A stretch of DNA of 64,000 bases, taken from the sequence record PV662128.1, one strand, 5' to 3'. The notes beneath the pieces were generated by a model. That model was not told the origin of the DNA, did not search any database, and saw only the letters and a program-made list of their open reading frames with translations. Made by a program: the position numbers and the translations under genes. Numbering within the stretch: the first letter of the stretch is position 1; every line of letters begins with the position of its first letter. Shown piece after piece: positions 52,347 to 58,740 of this stretch.

Positions 52347-52637
52347 ATGGCTCGTAAACCTTCTACCGTAGGCGAGATTATTAAGAAAGAGTATCTCGAA
52401 CCGATGAACATGAGTATGATGGAACTCTGCCGTCAGACTCATTCGAGCAAGGGCGCTATTTTTCATCTGATTAATGGCAAAAATCGTCTGAGTATTGAGA
52501 TGGCGTTTAAACTCGCTAAGCTTTTTAACACGTCCGAAGAGTATTGGCTGAATATTCAGCGTCAGGTAGATCTTTACGAAGCTAAGCGGGATAAAGAGCT
52601 TAAGGCGACGTTAAAGAAAATCATCCCTGTTGAGTAG
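52347..52637 (+). CDS. higA: HigA-family HTH antitoxin (orphan)
   Basis: VGEIIKKEYLEP.NMS..EL...I..LING...LS.EMA.KLA.LF.TS.EYWLNIQ..DL. Confidence 0.85.
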   Translation: MARKPSTVGEIIKKEYLEPMNMSMMELCRQTHSSKGAIFHLINGKNRLSIEMAFKLAKLFNTSEEYWLNIQRQVDLYEAKRDKELKATLKKIIPVE

Positions 52638-52665: not shown

Positions 52666-53208
52666 ATGATGATGATCAATTGCTTAGAACCTAACGAATT
52701 TGCTCAGTTTAAAGCACAGTGGGATAAATATCTCGAGGAGGGTCTTCCCGGACTCGATGAAAGAATGAAGGGTCCGATGCTGATCCTGAACGCGATACCT
52801 GGGGTAGCGACCCGCTTTTGTTGTTCCGGTCATAGCTTTGAAGAAAAGTTAAAATCTCACCCGACCAAAGCGTATTCTCGAGTGCAGAAAAGGAACTTCA
52901 TTTTTGTCGTTGAAGAAGGTCATGCCGATATTTTCTTTGCGTTTGAGATACTCTTCAAATTATTGAACAAAGACGAGTTTAGTTTTTGTCGGCCTTCTTT
53001 AGAAACCACTCTGCTCAAGAAAAACTTCGGTGAGTCGGAAACCTATCCGGTTTGGGTATTCGAAATGAATTGGGTTTACGAACTTACCGAGGAAGAAAAA
53101 ATAAAGGGAAGGGATAAGACCCAGAACGAACTCTGGGAGAAACTCCTCAGAGGACTGTTCCTGATCACCGATCCTGAAACCCGTCATAAGCATCAGGAGT
53201 TACTCTAG
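52666..53208 (+). CDS. Hypothetical protein with LN.IPG..T.FCCSGH motif
   Basis: 180 aa; the motif loosely recalls the TYW3-like N-terminus. Confidence 0.65.
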   Translation: MMMINCLEPNEFAQFKAQWDKYLEEGLPGLDERMKGPMLILNAIPGVATRFCCSGHSFEEKLKSHPTKAYSRVQKRNFIFVVEEGHADIFFAFEILFKLLNKDEFSFCRPSLETTLLKKNFGESETYPVWVFEMNWVYELTEEEKIKGRDKTQNELWEKLLRGLFLITDPETRHKHQELL

Positions 53209-53343
53209 TCTCTTCGATATTTAGCAAAGCAACGGTTCTCTTGTTAAAATAAATAAATGATGTAATGGTATGGTCAGTCGACCTAGGTGAGGGTGATCTT
53301 GTGGGTTACCCTCATTCCTTTCGTAAATATCGGAGAAATAAAA

Positions 53344-53859
53344 ATGGCTAAAGAAAACGTTGTTCGTATTCCGCTGTATAACTTAGGCAATCTTTCTTGT
53401 GTAGGGTATCGAGAAGGGTGTGGGTATAACGTTAAGGTTTATTGGGGTGATTATGTGCTGTCCTCTAAACCTAATCTCACCCAAGCACTCGACTTTGCTT
53501 ATATCGGGGTTCGACTCTTCTCCCCGATCCACAGTGAATGGTTAACCAACGATCTGCGTTTAGTTATTTGTGAGTCGTTGATAAAAGCCCGTTTATTAAT
53601 TGATGGCAATCATAGCGTAGAACGTTCTCCTGTTCTTTCGGAGGGATTCCTTAAGCATTGGAAAACGGGTGAATCTGGAGTAGACTATTATCTGGAAGTG
53701 CGTCTTGCTAGAGACCCAGGTAAAATAGAAGACGACATCGTTCAAGTCACCTTAAAGTACGACAACGACGGGTGTAACCTCACTCATAGCTTCAAGAAAT
53801 ACGCTTCCATTTTCAACTATAAAGAGCATTTAGGTCTTTTCAAACAAGTTACCTATTGA
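53344..53859 (+). CDS. Hypothetical protein (start moved to ATG 53344)
   Basis: GGAG SD before ATG 53344. Confidence 0.7.
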   Translation: MAKENVVRIPLYNLGNLSCVGYREGCGYNVKVYWGDYVLSSKPNLTQALDFAYIGVRLFSPIHSEWLTNDLRLVICESLIKARLLIDGNHSVERSPVLSEGFLKHWKTGESGVDYYLEVRLARDPGKIEDDIVQVTLKYDNDGCNLTHSFKKYASIFNYKEHLGLFKQVTY

Positions 53860-53866
53860 GCCAATC

Positions 53867-53899
53867 TAACTCCTACTCCCTTATCGGGAGTAGGAGTTA
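53867..53899. repeat. ACTCCTAC hairpin family, copy 5 (exact reverse complement of copy 2)
   Basis: TAACTCCTACTCCC-ttatc-GGGAGTAGGAGTTA. Confidence 0.9.
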
Positions 53900-53974
53900 T
53901 TACACATGTAAATAAAAACAGACCTTTATTATCTCTATGTGGGACAAACCATAATCTTTTTAGGAGCATATAAC

Positions 53975-54277
53975 GTGAACTTATATTTAGTTAAACCAAT
54001 GGAATTTACCGGTGACGAAGATATCAACGGCATGGTCGTTGTAGCGCCTGACACCAACACCGCATTGCTGACCCACCCTCATATCGACGAAGACGGCAAT
54101 ACCTTTGAATGGCATACCGAAACCCATTCAGAACAAGGCCTGTGGGTTGACGAAGCAGGGCGAACTGATGTGTTCCACGGCTGCGCTTGGCCAGCTCCTG
54201 ATCGTCTGCTCTGTGTTCTGTTGGGCGTGGCCGCTGACGGGATGGAAGAAGGCATCGTGCTGGTCGATCGCGATTAA
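53975..54277 (+). CDS. Small acidic phage protein, paralog of 48562-48804 (start moved to GTG 53975)
   Basis: TTTAGGAG SD; MNLYLV...VVVAP...HP...LLG...GIV. Confidence 0.7.
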   Translation: MNLYLVKPMEFTGDEDINGMVVVAPDTNTALLTHPHIDEDGNTFEWHTETHSEQGLWVDEAGRTDVFHGCAWPAPDRLLCVLLGVAADGMEEGIVLVDRD

Positions 54278-54287
54278 GGGGCGGTAA

Positions 54288-54809
54288 ATGAAAGTCATTA
54301 AATTTGGCAATGTGACCGTCAATAAAAATAACATGCTGGAAATCACCCTGTTTAATTTCGCCAGCGGGTACGATGGCGAGCCAGTCACACCAGCAGGGAT
54401 GATCAAAGGTATCGTGAACTGGCTTAATGATTACGTCGGTAAGACAGACGGGATGTTCAACCCCGTTAAGGATTTAAGTGGCGCACCGCTTATAACAGGG
54501 TCAAACATTCCAAAAGATCAGTCGGTGTTAATGATTCCCGACGGTACGCTGGCTTTAGCCGAACTGGATCCTCCTGTTTTTAGCACCAACGAATACACGT
54601 TCTTAGAAGTAGAAGAACGCGTTTATCAGCTCATAGCGATGCAAATAGGAATAACACTCACTACCGAAATGGGCGTCATTCCTGGGTCGGTTGAACTGAT
54701 CGATGTGGACGATCCTCGTCAGCATCCAGATAATGTTGTCGGTTATTGTTTGACATTAGAAAACCCACCGCGGTATTTCTTGAAAGTTAAGAATAAAGGA
54801 GTTCGGTAA
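54288..54809 (+). CDS. Hypothetical protein
   Basis: 173 aa; TAATG overlap with next gene. Confidence 0.7.
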   Translation: MKVIKFGNVTVNKNNMLEITLFNFASGYDGEPVTPAGMIKGIVNWLNDYVGKTDGMFNPVKDLSGAPLITGSNIPKDQSVLMIPDGTLALAELDPPVFSTNEYTFLEVEERVYQLIAMQIGITLTTEMGVIPGSVELIDVDDPRQHPDNVVGYCLTLENPPRYFLKVKNKGVR

Positions 54810-55594
54810 TGTTAGAGACTCAGCTTAAAGATCGTCTGACCATCTTAAACACTTTCGAATGGTTTACCTACTTCTGGAACAAATTCGAAGAAGGCATGTA
54901 TGGTGTAAGACGAACCATGCATAGCGCTTCGGTTGCGATTAATAACGGAGATTGCGCGGTAGCCGCTTTGGCGGTAAGTTCTGTTTTGAATCGTCGTCTG
55001 GATGTTAACGTGGGGATAGCTCGCAATACTCATCACGCCTGGGTCGCCATCGGAAACGATATCTTTGATACCGAATATCCCACAGGACACGATATAGCGA
55101 GTTTTAAATCTAAATGGGGTGATCGTATCAGTGAAGTGGTTTTAACGCCTGAGACTCTCGTAGAAGAGTTTATGCCGTGCGATCTGGTGGGTGCTTATCT
55201 CGTAAAAGAATTTTGCGGAATAATGGGTGAGTTGCATCCTAAAGAAATCGATTTTCTTCTGAGCAATCCTACCGAATATGAATCTCCGGGAGGAGTCAGT
55301 AAAATCGGAAAAGCCCTCGCATTTGCAGTAGAGGAAACTTTGAAAACTCGCAGCACGGCGACCACCATCAAACACGAGTCTTACTTCACTGCTAAAGAAG
55401 CCACGATGGACCATGAGCTCAAAGATCACGTCAGGGATATCTATTCCGGTATTCTGATCTGCGTACTGGTGGATAAAAACGATTACAAAGTGATCGGAGA
55501 GTCTTATCGCAAAGGGCCAGAAACAGAACGCACACTACTGGCGAGATCAAGAGCCAAGTTTATTGCTCTGGATAAACTTAAAGACGTAGCGTGA
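54809..55594 (+). CDS. Cys-His-Asp (transglutaminase-like) domain fused to a C-terminal N4 gp49/Sf6 gp66-family domain
   Basis: NGDCAVAA / HHAWV / IFD; C-terminal HESYFTA...ICVLVDKNDYKVIGES...PE...AR..A...ALDKL. Confidence 0.6.
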   Translation: MLETQLKDRLTILNTFEWFTYFWNKFEEGMYGVRRTMHSASVAINNGDCAVAALAVSSVLNRRLDVNVGIARNTHHAWVAIGNDIFDTEYPTGHDIASFKSKWGDRISEVVLTPETLVEEFMPCDLVGAYLVKEFCGIMGELHPKEIDFLLSNPTEYESPGGVSKIGKALAFAVEETLKTRSTATTIKHESYFTAKEATMDHELKDHVRDIYSGILICVLVDKNDYKVIGESYRKGPETERTLLARSRAKFIALDKLKDVA

Positions 55595-55619
55595 TCATTC
55601 AATTTTAGGAAATAAAATC

Positions 55620-57167
55620 ATGAACGAAGAAAGTAAAATCGCGATCGTTTCTCATGGGGAGGTTGTTGAGTTTGATCCTAACAGCACTGAGCATCGAAAG
55701 ATTCTTGAGTCGGCAAATAGGAAACTTATAACGAACGAACTCTACCAGCGAGATTTAAAACGCTTTAAAGAGCTGGTTTTGTTTTATCAAAGTGCGGTTA
55801 GCAAAGAAACCATCGATGATAAAATTGAGGAGTTCTTAAGGGCTACCGGGATAAGGTTGGGCTATTCTGATCTGGCCATTTTTAACTACGGGTACCCGGA
55901 CATAGATGGATACTTCGGAACTCTCTATAACCGCGCAATGGGGATTGAACCCCCTTCTGTGCCGGCTGATGAGAATCCGATAGTCGGACTGAAGGAAAAT
56001 AGCTTAAAACCCCAACTCCCCTCAAGTCACACTGGCGGGGGATTATTGTACGATATTCTGCTTCGTAAATTTAACCGTTTCATGCAGAGCATAACGACCG
56101 AGCTTTTAATATTAGGGCGCGGAAGATCCTTAACAACGGAATGTCGGATTGAAACAAACATACTCAGAAAAATAGAGGGGTTTAATAAAGAAACGAATCT
56201 GGGGCTGGATCGTGAGATCGTACAAAATTGCCCAATCGATGAAAATTTGCAAACTGGGTATTTTAATGTTCTTTTCGTAGGCCTAATTAAACGATCAGAA
56301 GAATTCAGAATACAAACGATCCCTCTTTCAGAGAAGGTAGGGTTTATCCAACCGAAATACGGTAAGGACGAGGGGGTTAAGGTGAATCCAAATATCCGTT
56401 TTTGGTACGATAAATTTGGAGTAAGTCATGAGATACCGCCCAACGAACCCATGGAAGCAGGTAGCGTTAAACGGAATGAGGGCTGCGTTATGGCTTATCA
56501 ACCATACGGTAACGGGGGATCTGTTCCGTCCCCGGATCCTCGTGATGAAAGCGTAAGGAGTAAAGATACTGTTATTCAAAACAGTATTTCAATTACCACC
56601 GGGAAGGTTAACATGCATGCGCTTGAGGCGGCATGTCGGACAATGGCGGAAAATATGATATCCGCACACCGCAAGCCCATCTTTTATGAATTTCGCGATA
56701 AAGTTTACGAGGCGCTGAATTCCGCTTATCTGAACCACGGGGCTCTCAGGGGGACTACTTCAAGAGAATTCCTATACAGCGATATTCTTTGCATCGAACG
56801 GTTTAAGCGCAAGTTTGGAATCGTTTTCTCAATCGAGGACATGAATCTATTTCTTAACGGCCGTATAACCGCCTCTGAGTTGTTCGGCAAATACGTTAGT
56901 TACCCCTATTCCGGGGAAAAGAAAATCAAAACGCGTGTCGAATACGATCTATGTTTGAGCATCTTGGTTTCATTATTGAGTTTGTTTAACCTTAATCGAA
57001 TGGATCGTGAATCAGTCGAACGAGCTAAACTATTGGGTGAGCAGCTCAATATTCGTTTTGATATCAACATCACGGAAGGCGATTTCCTGGATATTCTCTA
57101 TCGTCGAGCAGCTCCTTCCCACGTCCTCAAAAAATACACTACCGCTGAAGCCACTAAAGGTAAATAA
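55620..57167 (+). CDS. Large hypothetical protein
   Basis: 515 aa; TTTAGG-N7-ATC-ATG start. Confidence 0.8.
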   Translation: MNEESKIAIVSHGEVVEFDPNSTEHRKILESANRKLITNELYQRDLKRFKELVLFYQSAVSKETIDDKIEEFLRATGIRLGYSDLAIFNYGYPDIDGYFGTLYNRAMGIEPPSVPADENPIVGLKENSLKPQLPSSHTGGGLLYDILLRKFNRFMQSITTELLILGRGRSLTTECRIETNILRKIEGFNKETNLGLDREIVQNCPIDENLQTGYFNVLFVGLIKRSEEFRIQTIPLSEKVGFIQPKYGKDEGVKVNPNIRFWYDKFGVSHEIPPNEPMEAGSVKRNEGCVMAYQPYGNGGSVPSPDPRDESVRSKDTVIQNSISITTGKVNMHALEAACRTMAENMISAHRKPIFYEFRDKVYEALNSAYLNHGALRGTTSREFLYSDILCIERFKRKFGIVFSIEDMNLFLNGRITASELFGKYVSYPYSGEKKIKTRVEYDLCLSILVSLLSLFNLNRMDRESVERAKLLGEQLNIRFDINITEGDFLDILYRRAAPSHVLKKYTTAEATKGK

Positions 57168-57344
57168 ATGCAACCACTGATTAGTCTTAAAGAGTTAGCC
57201 AAACTCCTGGGTATTTCCGTTAAAACCCTGAAAATTCGTATTAGCAAAGGTACCGTTCCCCAGCCTTTCGTTAGCGAGGGAAAAAATATGCGTTGGATGC
57301 GTTCTGACGTTGAACATCTCTTCCCTAAAGAAGAAGTTGTTTAA
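57168..57344 (+). CDS. AlpA/Xis-like winged-HTH DNA-binding protein (58 aa; not in ORF track)
   Basis: MQPLISLKELAKLLGISVKTLKIRISKGTVPQPF..GKNMRWMRSDVE. Confidence 0.8.
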   Translation: MQPLISLKELAKLLGISVKTLKIRISKGTVPQPFVSEGKNMRWMRSDVEHLFPKEEVV

Positions 57345-57362
57345 GTTGTAAATATTTACAAC
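57345..57362. promoter_or_regulatory. 18-bp perfect palindrome, candidate operator overlapping a sigma70-like promoter
   Basis: GTTGTAAAT|ATTTACAAC; TTGTAA-N18-TATTGT. Confidence 0.45.
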
Positions 57363-57416
57363 CCTGTACTATTGTAATGGTTAACCGACCGTAAACTTTA
57401 ATTAAAGGAAAAACTC

Positions 57417-57698
57417 ATGTCTAAAATCAAACTGACTGAAGAACAACTCGCCGCCCTGAATGGTTCGGAATCCTTCGTCGTCTCCGGCCTGGCTGCCGGC
57501 AAAGTCTCCCTGGCAACCGACGTGTCTGTCATTACCCTGGATCTCGATCCGGGTCAGCTGACCATCGGCCAAACCCTGAAGATCAAAGACGGTGTCCTCG
57601 TCACGGACAAAGCCCAGGAACAAAAGGCCGAAAAAGCCAAAGGTAAAAACAACCCGTCTCCGGAAATGGCGGCCAAACTTGCCGGCAGCGCCTGCTAA
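57417..57698 (+). CDS. Small protein with strong high-expression codon bias
   Basis: AAGGA SD; dominated by CTG/GCC/ACC/AAA codons. Confidence 0.8.
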   Translation: MSKIKLTEEQLAALNGSESFVVSGLAAGKVSLATDVSVITLDLDPGQLTIGQTLKIKDGVLVTDKAQEQKAEKAKGKNNPSPEMAAKLAGSAC

Positions 57699-57708
57699 GT
57701 TAAGGTAA

Positions 57709-57736
57709 AGTAGGAGGAGGGTTTCCTCCTCCTACT
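57709..57736. repeat. Hairpin related to the ACTCCTAC family, with arms swapped
   Basis: AGTAGGAGGAGG-gttt-CCTCCTCCTACT. Confidence 0.65.
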
Positions 57737-57767
57737 CCCTCGTGTTTATTTTTTGGGAATTTAGTCA

Positions 57768-58331
57768 ATGACCATAAAGACTCTTTCCGGGAGATTATTT
57801 CTTAACCGAGACACATCTAATCTCAATAGTGTAAGTTGGTCGGCCAAGACCACCATAATTGACTACGAAACTAAAAAGAAAGAAAAGATTCACAACGAAA
57901 TCTTTGACGCCAATATCAACATACGCAAGGGGAATACGCTATTAGTCATTCATACTAATAACGAGGGGATAGATAAAAATTTCGAATCCTTTTTAGCCAA
58001 ACTCCGGCTGATGGATACCCACATCAGAGACTTCATTGAGAAGTGCGCGATTAAACGCAGTAAAAAAGATACTGTAAAAACAGAGCGTTATTGGCTAAAC
58101 GATATCGAAGGAATCGATAAAGTGTTTACAGGGTCGTTGGTAAAAACCTATGATCTTTATAGTAATACGTTAGAGATCAGTTCGTGTGAACGCTCAGCGC
58201 GATGGTACGTTAATCGTTTTGGTAGTCAAGGCAAAGGTGAGATAGGCGAGCTCGTTATCTTACAACGCGCTATAGACCGCCTTATTAGAGATATCGGTAT
58301 TGTTTTAAAAGAGGTTAAAAATGGGGCGTAA
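57768..58331 (+). CDS. Hypothetical protein
   Basis: 187 aa. Confidence 0.7.
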   Translation: MTIKTLSGRLFLNRDTSNLNSVSWSAKTTIIDYETKKKEKIHNEIFDANINIRKGNTLLVIHTNNEGIDKNFESFLAKLRLMDTHIRDFIEKCAIKRSKKDTVKTERYWLNDIEGIDKVFTGSLVKTYDLYSNTLEISSCERSARWYVNRFGSQGKGEIGELVILQRAIDRLIRDIGIVLKEVKNGA

Positions 58332-58740
58332 GAGTCACGGGGAAGATTATTCCGACGCGGAGCTTGATTTTATCGCAAGCGTAGCACACAGCGTGCAGTG
58401 TGGGATGGACTATGCCTTCGGTCTACCGGTATTGCATCAATGGAGACTGATGGGAGATGAGTATAAAAACCAAATGAAAGCATCCGTCAGAGCTGTTCTG
58501 GTTCATGACAAATCACCAAAATCCCTCCATGATAGTTGGGTGCTTCGCCTCACCCAAGAAGGTTGGGTTCGTGGAGAAGTAAAGGACGTAGAAAAGAAAA
58601 CCCATCCGTTATTAGTTCCTTTTGACGAACTTCCTATCGAATGGAAACTTCGTCTTCGTCAATTCCGGGCAGCAGTTATTCCTTTTAGAAAAACCAAAAA
58701 TACGGTGAAATCTAATCCAATCGTTTTTTCAACAAAATAA
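58321..58740 (+). CDS. RyR-domain protein
   Basis: HDSW...EGW..G.VKD..KKTHP.LVPFDELP. Confidence 0.85.
   Translation: MGRKSHGEDYSDAELDFIASVAHSVQCGMDYAFGLPVLHQWRLMGDEYKNQMKASVRAVLVHDKSPKSLHDSWVLRLTQEGWVRGEVKDVEKKTHPLLVPFDELPIEWKLRLRQFRAAVIPFRKTKNTVKSNPIVFSTK

Follow-up and report, generated by a model that had tools for sequence, protein, structure and literature searches.

Raoultella phage protein VBZKP1_205 joins a divergent Acb4-like domain to a putative Cys-His-Asp catalytic domain

What might a jumbo phage do with a protein that carries a relative of the nucleotide sponge Acb4 behind a putative Cys-His-Asp catalytic domain? The gene that raises this question, VBZKP1_205, is annotated as 'hypothetical protein' in sequence record PV662128.1, the 257-kb genome of Raoultella phage VB_ZK_P1, a Miami-like jumbo phage of Raoultella/Klebsiella. 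It spans positions 54809-55594 of a 64,000-nucleotide stretch of this record (the window, to which all positions refer unless another genome is named), lies on the plus strand as do all features described for it below, and encodes 261 residues from an ATG start to the stop codon. The product is a two-domain fusion protein. Residues 1-184 (54809-55360) belong to the phrog_6870 family and form a putative Cys-His-Asp catalytic domain without a solved structural relative. Residues 185-261 (55361-55591) form a divergent Acb4-like domain, related to Pfam family PF13876 and devoid of the first and last helices of this family. For VBZKP1_205 and its chimallivirus-related, Miami-like phage, we favor the reading of a two-module counter-defence protein, to which our analysis gives about an even chance. 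The original prediction for this locus, made from the letters of the window, had described the open reading frame (ORF) at 54809-55594 as a Cys-His-Asp enzyme joined to a domain of the gp49/66 family. This ORF is intact and its translation contains every string that was quoted in support: NGDCAVAA at residues 46-53, HHAWV at residues 75-79, IFD at residues 85-87, IKHESYFTA at residues 187-195 (from nucleotide 55367) and ICVLVDKNDYKVIGESYRKGPETERTLLARSRAKFIALDKL at residues 217-257. The point at which the gp49/66 likeness was said to begin, about 55361, is also a fair estimate.

The family in question, PF13876 (Phage_gp49_66), comprises N4 gp49, Sf6 gp66 and Acb4. Acb4 founded this family, and its membership had been given correctly in the original prediction; the protein is a homotetramer that sequesters the cyclic dinucleotides of the cyclic-oligonucleotide-based antiphage signaling system (CBASS), acting as a sponge for cyclic GMP-AMP (cGAMP) with pockets between the subunits (10.1101/2024.12.30.630793). 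A tblastn search of 50,697 phage records with an 87-residue C-terminal piece of VBZKP1_205 returned 137 weak matches outside its own clade (E 0.07-9), and among the matches listed nearly all span about 80-85% of the query. Nine of these matches, drawn from different genera and with Sf6 gene 66 among them, were scanned, and all nine are PF13876 members with 109-121 bits. Profile comparison by hhalign pairs the alignment of the clade with ten bona fide PF13876 members at 93.0% probability (E 3.5e-7, 72 columns, 32% identity), and the C-terminal domain alone with the same ten members at 94.9% (E 4.6e-8, 73 columns, score 46.4). As controls, 300 column shuffles scored 11.2 ± 2.5 (maximum 20.3), the N-terminal domain 9.3 and the reversed domain 10.9; the negative controls, among them an unrelated 123-residue phage protein at 0.1%, reached a probability of 0.1-0.2%. 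A hidden Markov model (HMM) of the ten members assigns 24.7 bits to VBZKP1_205 (E 4.4e-7) and at most 5.8 bits to the other ORF segments of the window (385 in total).

The residues behind these scores are those that characterize the family. Twenty columns are invariant across the window's domain and the ten members, including E-x-Y-F-T-A, C-V-L, N, V-x-G-E-S and P-E, and the C-terminal domain also carries the family-conserved R/A/A/K motif in helix alpha-4. Both the alignment and the hhalign pairing match the segment E-S-Y-F-T-A (residues 190-195, 55376-55393) to the family-invariant E-x-Y-F-T-A. In the alignments, C-V-L-V-D-K-N-D-Y-K-V-I-G-E-S (residues 218-232, 55460-55504) coincides with the conserved beta-strand core common to Sf6 gp66 and SPO1 Acb4. 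The family profile in turn matches the solved structure of SPO1 Acb4 (9E4W) with an E value of 6.5e-6. Family-specific tblastn matches, the hhalign result, the subfamily HMM, the invariant columns and the reach to 9E4W therefore confirm, at the level of sequence comparison, that residues 185-261, though divergent, are genuinely related to the Acb4/Sf6 gp66/N4 gp49 family. The predicted gp49/66 likeness lies far above chance.

Is the fusion itself genuine? Six phage genomes and three metagenomic clusters contain the full-length protein, invariably with 261 residues, and it is confined to the Miami clade. The nearest relatives of the window, at 87-90% DNA identity, are the Klebsiella phages Miami (genus Miamivirus), KPN8, phiKp_32 and YC1, and the 'Stenotrophomonas' phage BUCTxx100. 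All six genomes of the clade contain the gene as a 786-bp ORF without an internal stop, in the same gene order, and no split form was found within the clade. Next to the standalone genes for the N-terminal domain in six other jumbo phages, no gene with PF13876 likeness was detected, which indicates that conserved neighbors were not the source of the fusion. The idea that two neighboring genes were joined here by a lost stop codon was rejected on these grounds, and the fusion stands as it had been predicted. Pairwise ratios of nonsynonymous to synonymous substitution rates (dN/dS) across the six genomes range from 0.06 to 0.28 for the N-terminal part and from 0 to 0.19 for the C-terminal part. 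Hence, both halves are maintained by purifying selection. Between the window and its relatives, dS itself in the C-terminal part (0.12-0.25) is below that in the N-terminal part (0.43-0.57) by a factor of two to four; this difference could stem from a mosaic or recombinant history, or from constraint at the nucleotide level.

A Shine-Dalgarno-like AAAGGAG, read from the sequence at 54795-54801, lies 7 nucleotides 5' of the ATG, and a ribosome-binding site is annotated at the equivalent position in phage Miami. The start of VBZKP1_205 shares one base with the stop of the upstream gene at 54288-54809 (TAATG), which suggests that the two genes are translationally coupled. An internal Met200 precedes DHELK. 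A separate product begun at this residue is unlikely, because the family-invariant E-x-Y-F-T-A at residues 190-195 lies upstream of Met200 and would be lost, and just a weak AAGAAG stands upstream of this ATG. A scan for promoters and terminators returned fewer sites than in shuffled sequence.

The N-terminal domain belongs to a small family. Residues 18-176 match positions 16-170 of the 174 positions of phrog_6870 in PHROGs (E 1.8e-25), and this near-full-length match means that the first ~180 residues are the counterpart of a normally standalone protein. Indeed, homologs with 20-37% identity are standalone proteins of 163-191 residues in jumbo phages, with ends that fall at residues 165-179 of VBZKP1_205, and a profile of the family scores VBZKP1_205 at 183 bits. 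Carriers of the standalone form include the Erwinia phages of the genus Agricanvirus RAY (gp117), Special G (gp119) and AH06 (gp123), phage pEa_SNUABM_37, Pseudomonas phage OBP (OBP_078), Salmonella phage SA002 and Aeromonas phage AerS_266. The domain is also found in about a dozen metagenomic clusters, several of them on contigs of 50-275 kb. The family spans nucleus-forming jumbo phages (Erwinia, Pseudomonas) as well as other jumbo phages (Salmonella, Aeromonas, Klebsiella). A metagenomic member of 233 residues (P0019, on a 34.7-kb contig) carries a different C-terminal extension of ~80 residues that matched no Pfam family and, on comparison, is not Acb4-like. The occurrence of a different extension suggests that the N-terminal domain tolerates added modules.

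Nine residues are invariant in all 18 members of this family that were compared (20-32% identity): N45, G47, D48, C49, H76, D87, G93, D125 and G128. Among these, Cys49 in the motif I-N-x-G-D-C (codon 54953-54955) is the candidate nucleophile, His76 (55034-55036) the candidate general base and Asp87 (55067-55069) the candidate third member of a triad. Conservation was not seen among the relatives for His75, which adjoins His76. The order and spacing of the three residues are Cys, 27 residues, His, 11 residues, Asp. A confident AlphaFold2 model of the domain, computed from the family alignment, reached a predicted local distance difference test score (pLDDT) of 94.2 and a predicted template modeling score of 0.90. 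In this model, Cys49 opens a helix (49-62) that is followed by strands 69-72, 77-81 and 84-86; His76 directly precedes strand 77-81 and Asp87 directly follows strand 84-86, so that the two residues flank adjacent strands. As modeled, the placement of Cys49, His76 and Asp87 is that of triads of the papain/transglutaminase type.

The two-module reading has to be weighed against a series of observations, several of which speak against it, in either half of the protein and around the gene. The curated Pfam model of PF13876 does not recognize the C-terminal domain at its gathering cut-off of 27 bits. Residues 185-232 score 12.8 bits (E 0.18) within the whole protein and 15.0 bits (E 0.037) when the domain is scanned alone, and this match, the sole one of the C-terminal part in Pfam, aligns just positions 8-45 of the 82 positions of the profile. 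The match of the tail to phrog_322 in PHROGs is weak. In a phmmer search of 1.84 billion representatives, the C-terminal domain retrieved its own clade and a single low-complexity repeat protein (P0005), which was rejected as a relative because the match is a repeat artefact; among PDB sequences, neither phmmer nor the clade profile reached 9E4W. The domain is also short. Missing from it are the N-terminal helix of the family and the first ~16 residues found in Sf6-type proteins, and it stops 11-20 residues before the C-termini of the latter. Relative to Acb4, the domain stops ~13 residues early and is therefore also devoid of helix alpha-5, which in 9E4W reaches in from the opposite dimer to line the ligand pocket (10.1101/2024.12.30.630793). 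An AlphaFold model of the C-terminal part is of low confidence (pLDDT about 50); this run was based on four near-identical sequences, had an overall pLDDT of 39.9 and was not used as evidence. The low-confidence model contains strands at 205-209, 216-222 and 227-233 and a helix at 240-260, and a fold search with it placed 9E4W at rank 38 with a non-significant E value of 1.6.

The ligand pocket is a further point of this kind. Ten residues of SPO1 Acb4 contact the ligand (10.1101/2024.12.30.630793; the residue numbers of that paper equal the chain index minus one), and we read their counterparts in VBZKP1_205 by hand across ungapped tool alignments: K36 maps to G214, F48 to Y226, E49 to K227, V56 to R234, Y57 to K235, F62 to E240, N63 to R241, I66 to L244, T70 to R248 and K81 to D259. 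None of the ten is identical and two are conservative (Y226 and L244); as Sf6-type members keep three of ten, the comparison is a weak test either way. All eight homologs that were examined in the Acb4 paper bound cGAMP (10.1101/2024.12.30.630793). Together with the three positions kept in Sf6-type members, this result implies that the contact positions do not define the family. We infer that the C-terminal domain may bind a ligand.

The same observations could be explained if the Acb4-like domain had been co-opted as a tetramerization scaffold, or as an RNA-binding module similar to double-stranded RNA (dsRNA)-binding domains, in which case nothing would be sequestered and the single function of the protein would reside in the N-terminal domain. 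This explanation, which we regard as unlikely though deserving of attention, would account for the loss of most ligand contacts (two of ten kept) and for the missing N-terminal helix and helix alpha-5. It also agrees with the relationship between the Acb4 fold and dsRNA-binding domains (10.1101/2024.12.30.630793), and with the finding that conservation is strongest in the beta-strand core and helix alpha-4, the regions that form the subunit interfaces of Acb4. However, the contacts vary in binding-competent members too, as the cGAMP-binding homologs and the Sf6-type members illustrate, and the basic substitutions R234, K235, R241 and R248 would be in keeping with a nucleotide pocket. The very low dN in the C-terminal domain fits a sponge and a scaffold alike.

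For the N-terminal domain, the points on the negative side concern its superfamily. Transglut_core3 (PF13471) is matched by residues 33-90 at E 0.007-0.012 and 16-17 bits, below the cut-off of 26, and this sub-threshold match is made by the window's own copy alone, with 17 of the 18 family members unmatched. Pfam does return both of the families that had been named in the original prediction, each below its curated cut-off. A comparison of the family profile with PDB sequences gave nothing relevant; the best PDB sequence match of the clade profile is 3RE2 (E 0.4), with an alignment that covers the Cys and His motifs; the search tool names this entry 'Predicted protein' only, and we take it to be menin. 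A Foldseek search of 350,542 PDB chains with the model returned none at E ≤ 0.001, the best being menin with an E value of 0.75 and a template modeling score of 0.30; menin entries recur among these matches without significance. In BFVD, the confident neighbors of the domain are exclusively uncharacterized proteins of jumbo phages (Moabite, FBKp24, USC-1, Eowyn and CBB). The earlier assignment to the transglutaminase/papain class therefore holds with respect to the invariant Cys-His-Asp and to its order and placement on modeled secondary structure elements, and does not extend to membership in the superfamily, given one sub-threshold Pfam match in 18 and no significant PDB neighbor. A transglutaminase/papain-like nature of the domain is plausible, and conservation and model together describe it as a phage-specific family without a solved relative that carries a candidate catalytic triad.

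Does this triad make an enzyme? Metals, too, are commonly bound by Cys, His and Asp, and Cys49, His76 and Asp87 could form a metal or structural site in a non-enzymatic binding module, for example a sponge or an inhibitor of a host protein. The lack of a significant match to a solved hydrolase would fit such a module, Acb4 is known to be fused to sponges rather than to enzymes, and the invariant N45, G47, D48, G93, D125 and G128 could line a binding pocket. On the other hand, a Cys-27-His-11-Asp pattern with the Cys at the N-terminus of a helix and the His and Asp on neighboring strands of the model is the classic arrangement of thiol hydrolases, and the sole matches of the domain to profiles and PDB sequences, weak as they are, are transglutaminase-like folds aligned on exactly these residues. 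We therefore hold a non-enzymatic domain to be rather improbable.

The surroundings of the gene contribute the last of these points. The neighboring genes are all of unknown function, so that the context gives no indication of an anti-defence island, and the models of PADLOC gave zero matches for VBZKP1_205 and its neighbors.

How may the two halves of this protein work together? According to the two-module reading, the C-terminal domain would oligomerize like the Acb4 tetramer and sequester the cyclic-nucleotide signal of a CBASS-type system, with a specificity that may differ from that of SPO1 Acb4. The N-terminal domain would be a thiol enzyme, a hydrolase or transferase of Cys-His-Asp type, whose activity would be independent and directed at a second target in the host, probably a further component of its defences. 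In such a protein, the Acb4-like domain would gather four copies of the N-terminal domain.

CBASS and type III CRISPR (clustered regularly interspaced short palindromic repeats) systems have effectors that are activated by a signal, and a nucleotide-binding type of domain beside a putative enzyme is reminiscent of them. In this spirit, the original prediction had surmised that the Acb4-like domain is a sensor and that the N-terminal enzyme is turned on when this sensor binds a second messenger of host immunity, so that the protein would be a signal-activated phage effector. Nothing in our analysis supports such a switch, and we consider it highly improbable. The characterized members of PF13876 are sponges, none is known to act as a sensor, and the characterized fusions are additive proteins made of two sponges. 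With a single exception, the N-terminal domain stands alone in the other family members found and hence needs no such switch. Moreover, the two domains meet where the last helix of the N-terminal domain ends, and no conserved element was detected between them. Since the published fusions of Acb4 with Tad2 or Sequestin consist of independent counter-defence modules, the two-module reading is simpler than a switch.

A bolder version of the two-module reading, which we put forward as a speculation with less than even prospects, is that the N-terminal domain represents an unrecognized family of jumbo-phage thiol enzymes that dismantle a host immune component, and that in the Miami clade this enzyme was welded to an Acb4-type sponge. 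One tetramer would then soak up the signal and disable the pathway, possibly by removing a protein modification or by cleaving a defence protein. If true, VBZKP1_205 would be the first sponge-enzyme hybrid and would reveal a new counter-defence enzyme fold.

The fusion has implications for both families. The counter-defence family Sequestin was discovered via its fusion to a sponge (10.1101/2025.07.12.664507). By the same logic, VBZKP1_205 nominates phrog_6870 (RAY gp117, OBP_078 and relatives) as a candidate counter-defence enzyme family; the invariant Cys-His-Asp suggests that phrog_6870 is an enzyme, unlike the sponge partners known for Acb4. The Acb4 family, for its part, extends to a divergent and shortened form that the Pfam threshold misses, and counts of the distribution of this family are therefore underestimates. 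The domain described here would be the first hint of an Acb4-type module in Miami-like jumbo phages.

Several features of the surrounding DNA and of related phages deserve mention in their own right. The gene directly downstream of the fusion gene (55620-57167, plus strand, 515 residues, no family match) is a variable spot: among close relatives, the length of its product ranges widely, from 296 residues (BUCTxx100, YC1) over 514 (Miami) and 566 (phiKp_32) to 570 (KPN8). It is followed on the plus strand by a gene for a 58-residue HTH_17-like protein (57168-57344), annotated as 'putative DNA-binding protein' in Miami and KPN8, and by one for a 139-residue protein (58321-58740) with a ryanodine-receptor-type (RyR) domain that matches PF02026 above the cut-off (E 2e-9). 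A small XRE-type helix-turn-helix protein (HTH_3, E 1.3e-9) is encoded in the flanking region at 52347-52637 on the plus strand. Miami (positions 133064-140597 of its genome) and BUCTxx100 (104112-110987) contain additional genes for a NadR-like protein (nicotinamide mononucleotide adenylyltransferase/ribosylnicotinamide kinase) and a PnuC-like transporter, which are missing from VB_ZK_P1 in the matching stretch at 53000-58000. The recorded host of BUCTxx100 (OR529409.1) is Stenotrophomonas, yet this phage shares ~88% DNA identity with the Miami-group phages of Klebsiella and Raoultella, and the host label deserves a check. According to a paper on nucleus-forming phages, Miami is a distant relative of Erwinia phage RAY. 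In RAY, Special G and AH06, the standalone gene for the N-terminal domain directly follows a gene for an HslU-like AAA+ 'ATP-dependent protease', an adjacency that was not seen in the other lineages examined. RAY gp116 localizes to the phage nucleus.

How does VBZKP1_205 compare with known systems? That such a fusion had not been described, as the original prediction had put it, is correct for this partner domain: in the literature searched, we found no paper on it, nor on any Acb4-type domain in jumbo phages. As a class, fusions of Acb4 have already been published. Some members of the Acb4 family have 'additional extensions' (10.1101/2024.12.30.630793), and fusions of Acb4 with Tad2 (Pasteurella phage Pm86) and of the PF21825 protein Sequestin with Acb4 (Pseudomonas phage YH6) are common, each domain blocking a different defence (10.1101/2025.07.12.664507). 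VBZKP1_205 resembles these proteins in that an Acb4-type domain shares one chain with a second phage-specific domain. Their partners, however, are small sponges, whereas the partner here is a 184-residue phrog_6870 domain with a candidate catalytic triad; a Pfam scan of VBZKP1_205 at E ≤ 10 matched neither Tad2 (PF11195) nor PF21825.

With SPO1 Acb4 (9E4W), itself phage-encoded, the C-terminal domain shares E-x-Y-F-T-A, the C-V-x-x-D/L-x-N-x-aromatic-x-V-x-G-x-S strands and the P/V-E...R...A...A helix, with ~32% identity over 44 aligned residues as counted by hand from the alignments. The members of the SPO1 Acb4 family are standalone proteins of 96-130 residues, whereas the domain described here is the C-terminal part of a 261-residue protein. 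The phrog_6870 proteins, which occur in several chimalliviruses, have the same domain as the N-terminal half, in agreement with it in invariant residues and in predicted fold, and structural neighbors in Serratia phage Moabite and Klebsiella phage FBKp24. In contrast to VBZKP1_205, these uncharacterized proteins are standalone, with 163-191 residues, and have neither an Acb4-like part nor a PF13876-like neighbor. Finally, most of the N-terminal domain is a helical decoration without a counterpart in the transglutaminase-like/papain-like superfamily, to which PF13471 and menin's transglutaminase-like domain belong, whereas the order and spacing of Cys, His and Asp, the Cys at the N-terminus of a helix and the His and Asp on adjacent strands of the model are the features that the domain has in common with these enzymes.

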